Source: Octopus bimaculoides (Eukaryota). From it: a stretch of DNA of 34,584 nt. Where the stretch lies: positions 15,556,803 through 15,591,386 of the forward strand of contig NC_068985.1 in NCBI RefSeq assembly GCF_001194135.2, given 5' to 3'. Shown here one piece after another: positions 20,408-29,537 of this stretch (the first letter of the stretch is position 1; every line of letters begins with the position of its first letter). A program made the translations under genes and the position numbers. Under the pieces are notes generated by a model. It searched no databases and was not told the DNA's origin. It saw only the letters and a list, made by a program, of their open reading frames with translations.

Positions 20408-20413
20408 CTAACA

Positions 20414-20593
20414 ATGTTGAAGCAATTGAAAGCCTTTGCCAAGAATTACACAGTGCTGCTTGTTATGATCCCTTCAGTAGTTGCCTTACATGTTGGTTGG
20501 TATTATATGCAATTCAATCCTGATTTAGTTGAGCCTGAAAAACAAGAGATTCGGATTTTGGGGAAAATATTTAAGAAAACCCCAAAAGAATAA
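20414..20593 (+). CDS. MKKS upstream ORF 1 microprotein, uMKKS1-like, 59 aa: MLKQLKAFAKNYTVLLVMIPSVVALHVGWYYMQFNPDLVEPEKQEIRILGKIFKKTPKE
   Basis: Lies in exon 20408-20617 (TTTTCTTTTCAG| acceptor, AAA|GTAAGT donor). A at -3. Basic N-terminus plus one hydrophobic segment. YTVLLVMIPSVVALHVGWY resembles human uMKKS1 YKVLVVMVPLVGLIHLGWY (recalled). Confidence 0.85.
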   Translation: MLKQLKAFAKNYTVLLVMIPSVVALHVGWYYMQFNPDLVEPEKQEIRILGKIFKKTPKE

Positions 20594-20749
20594 ATTAGAA
20601 ACTCCAAATTACTCAAAGTAAGTTAATGTTTTTAATAAATATTGGAAAAAAGAAAAACCCATTCCTTAAAATTTTTTTTTGTTTATTTTGTTTTCTGGCT
20701 GATATCAAGTGAGGGCTAAATTATTATACTAGGTGTAACTCTTGTAAGC

Positions 20750-25150: not shown

Positions 25151-28100
25151 GTAATTAGTTAATTATTTTAAACTGACATTATGTTGTATTAAATTATCTG
25201 TTTAACCCTTTAGTGTTTAAACCAGCCACATCTGGCCCAAATATTCTACATGTTTTATATTTGAACTAGCCATATCTAATCTCTCACACCTAACCTACAT
25301 TGACATTCTAAAAATAAATATTCACATCATTGAGTTTTCAAAGCTATGAGATAATGTATGATTAATTCAAAACAATTTGAGTGAAAAGGCATTACATTTA
25401 ACAGAGTAATTTGAACATTAAAGGGTTAATATGTCCTTATAGAAAATGAACAAGTGCCAATGTTAGCTTTGGCCAAGTTTCTACAGTTGGATGCCCTTTC
25501 TGATGCCAATCACTAGATGCTTTTTTCATGTCACCATCCCTAGTGAGGTCTCTAAAAGAACAGGAAAATAATAAAAACTCCTTTGATTATGTGTGTGTGT
25601 GTGTGTGTTTGGCAGGGAGTATTTGAGAGAGTGGGGAGGTGGTTTTATGCTGGATGTTGAGAGGTTGAAGTGTGATAGTCTTGCTATAGAAGAGATAAAT
25701 GGCTATGCCACATATAATGGTGGATGGGAGTAACTGGAAAGAAGGTAGAGATGCTGGTGACTAGATACCAGATCATCTCAAAATACAAGGTGAGTGTAAG
25801 AGAGGATAGAGGCAGTGAATTGGGGTGGGAAGGTAATAGTTAGAAATAGGGGTAGAAATGAATGTAATGAATGAATGAGAATGGATATGCAATTGATGGG
25901 AGATAGCAGGATAGAGAGAGCATAGGGTTAGAGAGATAGAAGTGGTTCAAGAAGGAGAATGTATCAGAAAGTAGGGTGGTAGGGATGTGATGTGCATGAG
26001 GTTGTAGCGGTGGGGAGGGAGATGGTAGAAATAAATAAGAGGGATGGGCAATGATAGGTGATGCATGATGGGCGATATGGTAATGTGTTGAGAATGATAG
26101 TAGATATGAGAGATGTTAAGACAGAGTATGGCAGAGAGAGTGCAATGACTGAAGGTACAGAAAATTGAGCAGTGAAAATAGTGTGGGGAAAGGATGATAA
26201 TGTGAATGAGAGATGGAAGGGGTTCCAAGAGGGAAGGGAGGTAATTGGAAGTACAAAGAAAAAGTTAGATGTAAAATGTGTTGGTTTTGCTCTCAAGTGA
26301 TTGCTGCAGCAGAGTAGTGCCATAGACAGAGGAGTGATGTTTGCTAGAGAATGAAATGTGGGGAATGCTTGACAGAGTGGAAAGGGTGGAAAGGCAGCGC
26401 TCTAATCAAGTTTGACCTGGGGCTAAACATCTACAGCTGGATGCCCTTGCTGATGCCAATCACTAGATGCTTTTTTTCATGTCACCATCCCTAGTGAGAT
26501 CTCTAAGTAACTTGAAAGATAAGAAAAGAACAAAAAAATAATAAAAACTCCCTAGATTATGCATGTGTGTGCGGGTGAGTATTTGTGAGAGTGGGGAGGT
26601 GGGGGGCTAAACAACAACACTGCTAGTAGTGATTTAATCTTGATAGTCTCTACTGTTTAAAATATATTTTCAGGTTCCGTTCCAATTAGTTCATTTTCAT
26701 CAGCTTGCTCTCCAGATCAGTTAGGGAGAATCAGTAAATTCTCTGTCATGGATGTTTTCGGAAAGCAGTGGCTTCATCTGAATCAGATTTCCAGCAGTTT
26801 AGTTACCCTTGTAGTTTGTAGTCAAATGGAAGAACAGCTTGAAGAATTAAAGGTTGGTTTGTCTCCTTTCTACAAGTGTTAGAATTGCAAGGAATTCTTT
26901 CCTTTATTTATTTATATTTTAATTTCATCATTCGCTTGAATATATAGTGTTTGCGAGTGGAGAAAGCTTTCATCAACAGCTAGTTATTGTCTCATACTGA
27001 GGATGGGTAACCATTTCAGAAACCATGATCTGTGAGTATTATGTAAGGTTGGAGATGGGAGCGATGACCTCCCTTGCAAACACTATACGGACACAGACTG
27101 TGTGTTCATAACCAGCAGGAAAAGATGTTTTCCTGGGGGCTTAAACAGCAGTAATATCATCCTTTATAGGACTGCCACATTCTGTTGGTGAATAAACTTT
27201 ACTATATATATGTATATATATATATAGTTGGTATTATGCAAAAATATCGTAAGAATGTTGCTTTTTCAGAAAACGAAAACATAGTCTCACCATTCCATAG
27301 CAAAACCATTGTACTACACTTTGACAATTTTTGATATCTTGGCATCTGAAGTAGCTGGAGATGTGATAGTTCGACCCAAAGAACCAGCTATTCCAAGTAA
27401 AAATAAATATTGATAAAAATGCATTTGGCCAAATTTTGACATATGACAAATTCTCTCCTATTCATTCTGCCATGTAGCAACATTAAATGATGATGGTATA
27501 AAGCTTTTAGAATGCCAAATGTAAAAAGAATGGTAGTAGAATGTGAATATTTGGGTAAAAAAAAAATATTTAGAGAAGTGTTGTTTATAATTCATTAATT
27601 TTTTAAAATAAAATTTATTAGAATTCTATTTTCTTTTATGAAATATTATTAAAAAAAAAAGATTAGAAGGAAAAATAGTGCATGGTAGCAAAATACTTCA
27701 GTTTTTATAGAGCCACATCTTTAAGATACAAGTATATTTATGAGATCAAAATATTTTATAGGTGTGGGTCTAGCTGTGTGGTTAAGAAAGGTGTTTCCCA
27801 ATCATATGGTTGGGTTCAGTCCCACTGCATGGCATCTTGGGCATGTCTTCTTATACAGCCCTGGGCTGACCAAAACCTCATCTGTCAATTTGGTAGATGG
27901 AAACTGAAAGAAGCCCATTGTACATGTGTTGTGTGTGTGTGTTTACCCATGTCATGACATGTCATGATTGTAAATCAACCTTCTAAGAAACACATGTCAG
28001 GTCTTGGGGAAACAGGTGAAGGTTGGCTGTAGGAAACCTGCCTCAACAAATTCTCTCCTATTCATTCTGCCATGTAAAAGTAGACATTAAAACAATGAGG

Positions 28101-29537
28101 ATGAATGTATTCATTTCTCTAAATTCCATCAGTTATGCAACAGAAGTGACACTCAGTGATAATCCTTCTAAAGTAGTAGGATAAGTTGGTATTTGTAAGC
28201 CTGTGGAATGTCTTTGAGTGGATTTTAAGTTGAGAGAGGGATTTATGTAGTTCATGTTTAATTCCAGTGTTTTTTTTTTTTTATATATATTTTGTTCAAT
28301 TTTACAGGTGAATTGCAACAATGTGATGTTAGCATTCCAGCACCTTCTCAGGACACCGGCTGTACTGTATGGTGGAGGCTGCTGGCAGTTCACTTTGGCT
28401 AACGAGCTTAGAGTTGAGGTAAGACTATTTTTTCTTTATTGGTTACTTGGAATATTTTCTTATTTGTTCTATCCTTTACTCATCTCTTCAGTATTTAGTC
28501 TTTCTCCTTGCTTCTCCAACTCATCTTCTCTTGAAATATTTATTATACGTTTCCTTGCTTCCCAACTACATGGATTCAGGGTCAGCCCCACTGCATGGCA
28601 TGTTGGGCAAATGTCTCCTGTTATAGCATCTAGCTGACCAAAAGCTTTATGAGTGAATGGATTTGGTTGGTGGAAATTGAAAGAAGCCTATTTTGTGTGT
28701 GTGTGTGTGTGTGTGTGTGTGTGTGTGTGTGTGATCATGATCACCATCATTTAACATCTGTTGTCCATGCTGGTATGGCTTGGACTGTTTTACCAGTCAT
28801 TCTTCTTCAGATTCTGAGTTCAAATTCTGCCAAGGTCAACTTTGCCTTTCATCCTTTCAGGGTTGATAAAATAAGTACCAGTGGAAAGCTGATATAATTG
28901 ACTTTCCCTCCCCTAAAATTAATGGACTTGTGCCTAAATTTGAAACCATTATTATTATTATTAACCCATGCTAGCATGGAAAGCGGACGTTAAACGACGA
29001 TGATTATTATAATTATTATTATTATTATTATTATTATTATTTATTTTTTTTTTTTGTCTATTTCAGGTTTCTGAAAATTTAGAAAGCTTCTCCAGTAAAC
29101 TGGATTGTTCCGAATCCCAGTTATTGCAGCTGTGTGATCATCTATGCACAAGTTTGGAACAAGCTGTTTCCCCATCTTCTCAGCAGAGTAAAAAATGTTT
29201 CACCCATCCTTCAGCTGGTCATCTTTGGATACAGGACGACCATGAAGTTAATGTAGAAAAAACTTGTTCATGTGGTTTGCTTTGTTGTAGTTTGTCAGAT
29301 TTGAAACTTCAACCTTTAGAACATTCTCCTTCATTTGACAGATTTTCTAAGAAAGAGCTTCATGGCTCTTACAACCCTCTTGATACAATATCCAGTTCTG
29401 AACCTCCAAAGAAACCTCTTCTAATGGACTGCTTTATTCCATGGAAAACAGCTGTAGAAATATCAGTACTTCTAGCCAATATGGCTCTTAGTACCAATCA
29501 GTTTATCTTTGACACCAACTGTAAACCATCAACATAA
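24160..29537 (+). CDS. MKKS: McKusick-Kaufman/Bardet-Biedl syndrome 6 chaperonin-like protein, 4 coding exons, 1752 nt = 583 aa
   Basis: join(24160-25150, 26674-26852, 28308-28418, 29067-29537), GT-AG, phases 1/0/0. Motifs VGPYGGIK, CQKVVHPCLK, LDRLG, GGGCW, GHLW, LLMDC. Large first coding exon followed by three smaller ones, as in vertebrate MKKS. Confidence 0.93.
25206..25425. mobile_element. piggyBac-type MITE (220 bp) with TTAA target duplication
   Basis: TTAA(25202-25205)|CCCTTTAGTGTTTAAA ... TTTGAACATTAAAGGG|TTAA(25426-25429); TIRs 14/16. Confidence 0.8.
25480..26602 (+). repeat. Local ~165-170-bp direct duplication (25480-25642 / 26430-26602)
   Basis: Shared TGATGCCAATCACTAGATGCTTTTTT..CATGTCACCATCCCTAGTGAG..AATAATAAAAACTCC..GAGAGTGGGGAGGTGG. 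Confidence 0.85.
26674..26852 (+). CDS. MKKS: MKKS coding exon 2 (GSVPISSF...QMEEQLEELK)
   Basis: TTTTCAG| acceptor, AAG|GTTGGT donor, 179 nt, open in the required phase. Confidence 0.9.
27760..27940 (+). mobile_element. SINE family A, 5' half
   Basis: GCTGTGTGGTTAAG..GGTTCAGTCCCACTGC..GAAAGAAGCCCATTG. Confidence 0.7.
28308..28418 (+). CDS. MKKS: MKKS coding exon 3 (VNCNNVMLAFQHLLRTPAVLYGGGCWQFTLANELRVE)
   Basis: TTTACAG| acceptor, GAG|GTAAGA donor, 111 nt, chaperonin GGG motif. Confidence 0.92.
28550..28732 (+). mobile_element. SINE family A, 5' half, ending in (TG)n
   Basis: CTTGCTTCCCAACTACATGG..CCCACTGC..GAAAGAAGCC then (GT)n. Confidence 0.7.
28805..28950 (+). mobile_element. SINE family D fragment
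   Basis: TTCTGAGTTCAAATTCTGCCAAGGTCAACTTTGCCTTTCATCCTTTC..AAGTACCAG..CTTGTGCC. Confidence 0.6.
29067..29537 (+). CDS. MKKS: MKKS terminal coding exon (VSENLESF...FIFDTNCKPST*)
   Basis: Poly-T + TTTCAG| acceptor, continuous with ORF 29124-29537, TAA at 29535-29537. Confidence 0.92.
   Translation, partial: VSENLESFSSKLDCSESQLLQLCDHLCTSLEQAVSPSSQQSKKCFTHPSAGHLWIQDDHEVNVEKTCSCGLLCCSLSDLKLQPLEHSPSFDRFSKKELHGSYNPLDTISSSEPPKKPLLMDCFIPWKTAVEISVLLANMALSTNQFIFDTNCKPST

Follow-up and report, generated by a model that had tools for sequence, protein, structure and literature searches.

Two small reading frames upstream of MKKS in Octopus bimaculoides and their relatives in other animal MKKS leaders

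We analyzed a 34,584-nt stretch of the Octopus bimaculoides genome (NCBI RefSeq assembly GCF_001194135.2, contig NC_068985.1, positions 15,556,803 to 15,591,386 of the forward strand), hereafter the window. In it, the gene for the chaperonin-like protein MKKS (BBS6) is preceded by two small exons, each of which holds one short open reading frame (ORF). We refer to these upstream ORFs as uORF1 and uORF2. The original prediction, made from the sequence alone, took the three ORFs to lie on one tricistronic transcript whose two small peptides are those of the human MKKS leader.

Anatomy of the octopus MKKS locus

Stretches of the window were spliced by script, and borders, ORFs and a map of ATGs were read from the spliced sequence (Table 1). 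This re-derived the predicted architecture of three exons with AG/GT borders and two complete ORFs of 59 and 54 amino acids (aa), with spliced spacers of 36 nt from the uORF1 stop to the uORF2 ATG and 19 nt from the uORF2 stop to the MKKS ATG. On an exon with splice borders, uORF1 lies 3.7 kb upstream of the MKKS ATG on the same strand, its start codon 6 nt after the exon 1 acceptor; the MKKS ATG lies 17 nt after its own acceptor. The start contexts (uORF1 acaATGt, uORF2 aacATGt, MKKS ataATGc) confirm an A at -3 in all three, as had been claimed. ATGs occur in the leader at spliced positions 7, 58, 83, 100, 223 and 407 only, with none in either spacer and none internal to uORF2. Stops part uORF1 from uORF2, which share a frame, and uORF2 and MKKS are in different frames, so that fusion with MKKS is excluded, again as predicted.

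By hydropathy estimate, each small ORF encodes a single hydrophobic stretch with basic flanks (residues 14-32 in uORF1, mean Kyte-Doolittle 1.74; residues 19-37 in uORF2). This fits a membrane anchor in both peptides, with no particular membrane implied. Further upstream lies exon 0, a probable non-coding leader exon. We read exon 0 as leader rather than coding because the ATG of the orthologous Octopus vulgaris gene model is ATA in the window and the frame contains stops.

The identification of the third ORF as MKKS held up. The ORF of the first MKKS coding exon matches Cpn60_TCP1 (Pfam, E 6e-34), and its best named relatives in a collection of 5.8 billion proteins are amphibian MKKS (29% identity, E 5e-36). 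All named top matches of this ORF with the Cpn60_TCP1 fold are MKKS, not CCT subunits. The four-exon model encodes 583 aa, which is also the length of the O. vulgaris model, and the first AATAAA 3′ of the last MKKS exon is at 29929.

Table 1. Features of the window (positions are those of the whole 34,584-nt stretch).
Feature	Position	Strand	Remarks
Exon 0, putative non-coding leader exon (minimum extent)	18098..18159	+	donor GT at 18160; orthologous to first exon of O. vulgaris model P0001
Leader exon 1, carries uORF1	20408..20617	+	ttttcag/CTAACA...CTCAAA/gtaagt
uORF1, 59 aa, predicted single-pass membrane microprotein	20414..20593 (with stop codon)	+	homology to human uMKKS1
Leader exon 2, carries uORF2	22398..22577	+	ttctag/GATTTG...TAACAG/gttagt
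uORF2, 54 aa, predicted single-pass membrane microprotein	22410..22574 (with stop codon)	+	unnamed invertebrate family
MKKS/BBS6 first coding exon	24144..25150	+	atttcag/AGTTTA...TAACAG/gtaatt; ATG at 24160
MKKS coding exon 2	26674..26852	+	tblastn with MKKS-like proteins; AG/GT borders keep frame open
MKKS coding exon 3	28308..28418	+	tblastn with MKKS-like proteins; AG/GT borders keep frame open
Last MKKS coding exon, ends in stop codon	29067..29537	+	tblastn with MKKS-like proteins; borders
Asparaginase_2-family gene	~14300-18070	-	placed by collinearity with O. vulgaris
Microsatellite in MKKS intron	23438-23587		(AT)76
Microsatellite in MKKS intron	24033-24140		TG/TA/CTGT-rich, directly before first coding exon acceptor
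Microsatellite in MKKS intron	28694-28733		(TG)20
Dispersed ~175-bp repeat	5116-5297, 7105-7299, 9690-9992, 19646-19849, 29993-30293, 31043-31219	both orientations	tandem, 161-nt period, at 29993-30293
Run of N (assembly gap) between (TA)n	32114 to ~33140

Relatives of the two upstream peptides

The human MKKS leader encodes two peptides, uMKKS1 (Q9HB66, 63 aa, also micro-MKKS63) and uMKKS2 (V9GZ13, 50 aa), which are mitochondrial (PMC7066179, PMC10908861). uMKKS1, a microprotein of mitochondrial membranes, is reported to dominate the protein output of the MKKS locus and to be required for respiration in a microglial line (PMC13577902). The human leader ORFs are now annotated as coding by GENCODE (PMC6886504; bioRxiv 10.1101/2021.06.10.447896). 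We took the human peptide sequences from the supplementary data of PMC7066179.

In a single BLASTP comparison, octopus uORF1 matched human uMKKS1 with 36.6 bits (E 2e-10), with 15 of 42 aligned residues identical (36%) and 27 similar. A hhalign comparison of 17 invertebrate uORF1-like peptides with a vertebrate uMKKS1 profile gave a probability of 98.9% (E 2.5e-17); the vertebrate profiles, for uMKKS1 and uMKKS2 alike, consist of three sequences each (human, Xenopus and Liparis). The invertebrate and vertebrate sequences have in common the motif Y-x-V-L-x-V...H-x-G-W-Y-x-[LM]-Q, and H26, W29 and Q33 (octopus numbering) are invariant among the invertebrate uORF1-like sequences. Judged by these comparisons, uORF1 is clearly a genuine ortholog of human uMKKS1, and for this first peptide the predicted match to vertebrate profiles was borne out.

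Relatives of both peptides were collected in a HMMER scan of 1.84 billion representative proteins, in which the query was a concatenation of the two octopus peptides and the cut-off was E≤1e-3. The scan returned 20 proteins. Thirteen unnamed small proteins matched the uORF1 half and five the uORF2 half; the others were an O. vulgaris model (P0001) and a teleost fusion protein. The latter (P0023, Liparis tanakae TNN27614.1, 125 aa) reads as uMKKS1 and uMKKS2 in a single frame, which may reflect real read-through or else an artefact of annotation or assembly. In word-indexed protein searches, uORF1 retrieved no entry but the O. vulgaris mis-model, and uORF2 retrieved none. Pfam gave no match for uORF1, uORF2, the human peptides or either family, and the sequence profiles of the PDB gave none for the peptides.

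The window is collinear with a segment of an O. vulgaris chromosome (L001) at ~85-93% identity (~90% overall in DNA), and that species preserves both small ORFs with their starts and stops, as well as all four splice sites. Compared with O. vulgaris, uORF1 carries 6 synonymous and 5 nonsynonymous changes (ratio of nonsynonymous to synonymous rates, dN/dS, 0.19), uORF2 5 and 5 (0.30), and the MKKS exon 23 and 9 (0.11). In the pooled uORFs (11 and 10 changes, dN/dS 0.24), 11 of the 21 changes are synonymous where 22% would be expected from a site ratio of 1:3.5 (binomial P 0.002). The original prediction of intact ORFs with a dN/dS below 1 thus agrees with what we found. The counts point to purifying selection on both octopus ORFs, as weak evidence from a single species pair. 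The two octopus genomes are so close, their flanking introns also being 85-90% identical, that the test is low in power.

The true 59-aa and 54-aa ORFs are unannotated in O. vulgaris. P0001, a "hypothetical protein" of 79 aa (L001, 10001-15441), is the sole annotated protein that matches uORF1, and its coding sequence is chimeric: it begins in an upstream exon, spans the first 29 residues of uORF1 and changes frame at the junction of exons 1 and 2. The model joins the O. vulgaris orthologs of 20408-20617 and 22398-22577, the equivalent of junction 20617^22398, together with one exon further upstream.

Could the small ORFs be purely regulatory, their peptides irrelevant, or arise by chance in an AT-rich leader? 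Short ORFs are frequent in leaders, and the human MKKS uORFs do repress the main ORF (PMC11837024). However, octopus and human share a conserved uORF1 amino-acid sequence, the uORF2 sequence is conserved in at least four further groups of invertebrate sequences, and dN/dS is below 1 in the uORFs. Because they are intact in O. vulgaris, with a dN/dS of 0.24, and have significant relatives among the 1.84 billion proteins, the ORFs do not look like products of chance. A uMKKS1-like microprotein also stands upstream of an unrelated main ORF (see below), an indication that selection acts on the peptide itself. We regard a purely regulatory or chance origin as very improbable.

The second peptide has a different set of relatives. 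The five proteins matched by the uORF2 half of the query (P0011, P0012, P0015, P0018 and P0021) scored E 1.7e-7 to 1.7e-4, and an alignment of seven family members (A1) has 12 invariant positions past the start Met: W13, N17, K18, F19, S21, Y30, A32, P35, P39, T43, E46 and R47. In octopus, uORF2 occupies the slot of uMKKS2, as the second small predicted membrane ORF between uMKKS1 and the MKKS start, and family members sit between a uMKKS1-like ORF and MKKS on other invertebrate contigs as well (L012-L014 and L016, described below). Similarity to vertebrate uMKKS2 was not significant in any comparison. BLASTP of uORF2 against uMKKS2 gave 16 bits over 10 residues (E 0.012), a hidden Markov model (HMM) of the invertebrate family, built from seven to eight sequences as were the family profiles, scored ~0 bits on human and Liparis uMKKS2, and hhalign of the family against vertebrate uMKKS2 gave a probability of 2.2% (E 0.021). 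With a divergent member from contig L022 added, the hhalign probability was 5% (E 0.008), still not significant. That alignment is ungapped and pairs NWAHSNKF...VYLATYPL with SWIRKNWL...VHLGTYFL; the W-x3-N spacing is kept, and N and the following [Y/H] are 13 residues apart, compared with 15 in the uMKKS1 family. A MAFFT alignment of uORF2 with vertebrate uMKKS2 was judged unreliable and not used.

Vertebrate uMKKS2 instead aligned with the invertebrate uMKKS1-like profile (hhalign probability 63%, E 7e-5), with a shared vHlGtY.lQ (alignments A2, A3 and A4). Similarly, phmmer placed human uMKKS2 on the uORF1 half of the joined query, as KNW--LLVAGISFIGVHLGTYFLQ against KNYTVLLVMIPSVVALHVGWYYMQ. 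Tested directly, the invertebrate uORF1 and uORF2 families showed no similarity to each other. Given that the uMKKS1 family, and not the invertebrate second cistron, is the closer match, these alignments suggest that vertebrate uMKKS2 arose by duplication of uMKKS1.

We weighed whether uORF2 is nevertheless a true ortholog of uMKKS2 that has diverged past statistical detection, in which case the three-cistron unit would be ancestral to bilaterians. The two peptides share the leader slot, a similar size and a single hydrophobic segment, and the ungapped alignment with the L022 member and the BLASTP result would be in keeping with common descent. On the other side stand the near-zero HMM score and hhalign probabilities of 2-5%, the better fit of vertebrate uMKKS2 to the uMKKS1 family, the absence from vertebrates of residues that are invariant in invertebrates (K18, F19, S21, P35, P39 and E46-R47), and the thrips and L002 leaders described below, which have no second ORF at all. 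Orthology of the two second cistrons is possible but, in our view, doubtful. On the present alignments, octopus uORF2 is a member of a conserved, unnamed invertebrate microprotein family that is not recognizably uMKKS2, and homology between the two is undemonstrated. The original prediction of the same two peptides in the same order is therefore upheld for uORF1 as uMKKS1 but not for uORF2, which shares with uMKKS2 only its position and a weak motif with equal spacing.

MKKS leaders in other animals and the question of a single mRNA

Contigs from other animals were fetched either via an MKKS-like protein or via a small peptide alone. Because each context was reached from one partner alone, the co-occurrence of peptide and MKKS is an independent test. 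Searches via the MKKS-like protein led to transcripts of the thrips Megalurothrips usitatus (L007 and L009-L011), in which a 68-aa uMKKS1-like ORF (206-412 in L009) is followed after 49 nt by a 559-aa MKKS-like ORF, and to a thrips-related contig (L002) with a 75-aa uMKKS1-like ORF (31-258), a spacer of 62 nt and an MKKS-like ORF. In the thrips genome (L006, 9393-9864) the small ORF is split by introns, and in the Logan contigs it is contiguous; the latter therefore represent spliced mRNA. Both the thrips and the L002 leaders contain a single uMKKS1-like ORF and no uORF2-like ORF.

Via uORF2-like peptides we reached contigs with all three ORFs. L012-L014 carry a 58-aa ORF, 56 nt, a 50-aa ORF, 25 nt and an MKKS-like ORF (587+ aa; 44% identity with octopus MKKS). 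L016 has the same order, with 62 aa, 64 nt, 60 aa, 36 nt and a 591-aa protein that aligns with frog MKKS over its full length at 28% identity (E 2e-69). On L018, reached in the same way, a uORF2-like ORF is followed after 448 nt by an MKKS-like ORF. L022 carries a uORF1-like ORF and then the divergent uORF2-like ORF, and an ENA contig, known from its gene table alone, has a uORF1-like gene and, ~500 nt downstream of it, a Cpn60_TCP1 gene. In Xenopus tropicalis (L019), uMKKS1 is at 9035, uMKKS2 at 9642 (9642-9797) and the MKKS ATG at 10001. At 7 nt before the uORF1-like ATG, where L014 has a tttcag intron acceptor, L012 and L015 have another exon joined (spliced leader), and these two are therefore RNA-derived. 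The position of this acceptor matches that in octopus (6 nt). On L015, too, the uMKKS1-like ORF lies upstream of MKKS.

A uMKKS1-like ORF thus precedes MKKS in vertebrates, a cephalopod, an insect and several other invertebrate contigs, and the three-ORF order occurs on single contigs in two invertebrate lineages besides octopus (L012-L014; L016). Because uMKKS1-like ORFs directly precede MKKS-like ORFs in an insect and other invertebrates, the linkage of uMKKS1 and MKKS very probably predates the divergence of protostomes and deuterostomes. The original prediction had assigned this age to the whole unit; it stands for the uMKKS1-MKKS linkage but not for the second peptide, which lacks significant similarity to uMKKS2.

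From the contigs of these relatives we infer that the octopus ORFs also share a tricistronic mRNA. Alternatively, the two small exons could be a bicistronic microprotein gene of their own, which would stop short of a neighboring MKKS gene expressed mostly from its own start. The O. vulgaris annotation does have two separate genes, the human locus yields short transcripts with poly(A) sites inside the leader that encode the microproteins only (PMC11837024, PMC13577902), and AATAAA/ATTAAA hexamers lie at 22834, 23172 and 23357, in the intron 3′ of the uORF2 exon, although poly(A)-like hexamers arise by chance in AT-rich introns. Against a separate gene, an MKKS ATG only 17 nt past a good acceptor means that MKKS requires an upstream exon, and the nearest donor on the same strand is that of the uORF2 exon. 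All three ORFs are also on one contig in L012-L014 and in L016. The two kinds of transcript need not compete, as separate-gene and tricistronic isoforms could coexist, as they do in human. We consider an independent bicistronic gene unlikely.

We therefore favor, as likely, an octopus MKKS (BBS6) locus with a leader comprising a probable non-coding exon and two microprotein exons of one ORF each, all on a single mRNA, with uORF1 as the ortholog of uMKKS1 and uORF2 as a positional counterpart from an invertebrate family. Several observations weigh against this reading. A lookup of the exact peptides of the octopus window in the assembly collection returned no record. In the O. vulgaris annotation, MKKS and the small P0001 are two distinct genes, and for this reason junction 22577^24144 is documented in no octopus record. 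Spacers as short as 36 and 19 nt, following ORFs of 180 and 165 nt, should make reinitiation inefficient. Finally, the resemblance between the octopus species extends to the introns, as noted above. Logan contigs of a related octopod (L003-L005) are genomic, with intron sequence preceding the MKKS ATG, and are silent on splicing.

On the single-mRNA reading, one mature mRNA would bear all three ORFs. Under cap-dependent scanning, initiation would occur mostly at the first AUG, with its A at -3, and yield the uORF1 microprotein. A minority of ribosomes would reach uORF2 by leaky scanning or reinitiation, and still fewer the MKKS AUG, because the spacers are so short. Leaky scanning would be compatible with the sequence since no AUG falls between those at spliced positions 100 and 223, nor between those at 223 and 407. 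The leader would then have two roles, as in the human gene: a source of independent membrane proteins and a brake on MKKS synthesis. This scheme, including octopus splicing, translation, localization and repression of MKKS, is drawn by analogy from the human locus and general scanning rules.

Several further features were noted. In O. vulgaris, an Asparaginase_2-family gene is head to head with the MKKS leader (L001, 1-9974), and the same neighbor in the same orientation is found on the mollusc-like contigs L012 (3-971) and L015 (62-1171). This arrangement suggests a conserved bidirectional promoter region between the Asparaginase_2 gene and the MKKS leader. The dispersed ~175-bp repeat, with many copies in the window and in L001, looks like a short interspersed nuclear element; Rfam had no match at the gathering score over the window, this repeat included. 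Five overlapping ORFs of 377-441 aa on both strands coincide with the run of N and were rejected as artefacts of the gap.

Remodeling of the unit and comparison with known systems

In a metagenome scan the full uORF1 alignment proved too variable, and a subset alignment was used, which yielded three loci. Two JGI metagenome contigs among our set carry a uMKKS1-like ORF upstream of a different main ORF. On L020, a 66-aa ORF (18-218) is followed after a gap of 56 nt by a DnaJ ORF (275-1021), and on L021 a 63-aa ORF (60-251) is followed after 28 nt by a DnaJ ORF (280-1059). The main ORF in both encodes a DnaJ-domain protein of 248-259 aa (Pfam DnaJ, E ~5e-22) in place of MKKS, and there is no AUG between the microprotein start and the DnaJ start on either contig. 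The linkage of the uMKKS1-like microprotein to MKKS is not obligatory. The original prediction had proposed that the unit couples the microproteins to synthesis of a chaperonin for BBSome assembly, and this idea is weakened because a uMKKS1-like microprotein precedes a DnaJ protein on these two contigs. The finding argues that the microprotein is an autonomous gene that uses polycistronic expression rather than a device bound to the BBSome.

These results can be assembled into a tentative scenario, in which we have somewhat less than even confidence. The leader would be more than 550 million years old, with uMKKS1 kept across Bilateria. The invertebrate second cistron would be a separate, undescribed family (W-x3-N-K-F-x-S...Y-x-A-T-x-P...E-R) that was lost in vertebrates or replaced there by a uMKKS1 duplicate, which is uMKKS2. 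The first cistron could be recoupled to DnaJ through a leader free of AUGs, and the microprotein, not MKKS, would be the evolutionary core of the unit.

If uMKKS1 and its position before MKKS have been kept from octopus and insects to human, it is an old, constrained gene and not a vertebrate curiosity. H26, W29 and Q33 would then be candidates for mutagenesis, and invertebrate models would become available. The locus also illustrates that annotation misses or mis-models leader microprotein genes, O. vulgaris P0001 being a case in point. For the origin and remodeling of polycistronic units in eukaryotes, both the unrecognized second microprotein family and the DnaJ-linked variant are informative.

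The human system itself is well known. According to Akimoto et al. 2013, as summarized in PMC11837024, translation of MKKS is repressed by the leader ORFs, and short RNAs that encode the peptides only arise when polyadenylation takes place within the leader instead; the peptide sequence accounts for part of the repression (PMC7530721). Conservation of the human peptides has been described as "across mammals" or "highly conserved" (PMC11837024, PMC8435553). A full-text literature search found no report of invertebrate counterparts, with the proviso that the ESUCA survey classed the MKKS uORF by taxonomic range in categories that include Lophotrochozoa and Insecta (PMC7530721) and may already cover them. 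Novelty is most likely to lie in the divergent second cistron and in the DnaJ-linked form.

Compared with the human MKKS leader, the octopus locus likewise has two small ORFs and then MKKS, each with its own start and stop, on separate upstream exons with a likely non-coding first exon. The first octopus peptide is homologous to the human one, whereas the second is not demonstrably homologous to uMKKS2. The human leader also has a further short ORF, uMKKS0. Other loci resemble this one in expressing a conserved microprotein upstream of a larger protein of unrelated function from the same mRNA: the MIEF1 uORF (MIURF), the SLC35A4 uORF and the ASNSD1 uORF (ASDURF). There, too, the main ORF is translated less because of the ORF before it, as we infer for octopus, but these loci have one upstream coding ORF instead of two in tandem, and the peptide families are unrelated. 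The tarsal-less/polished rice gene of insects similarly places several small ORFs with short spacers on one capped mRNA, an arrangement that the octopus mRNA would share. In contrast to the octopus unit, in which two different membrane peptides of 54-59 aa are followed by a 583-aa chaperonin-like protein, tarsal-less encodes repeats of one tiny peptide and has no long downstream ORF.

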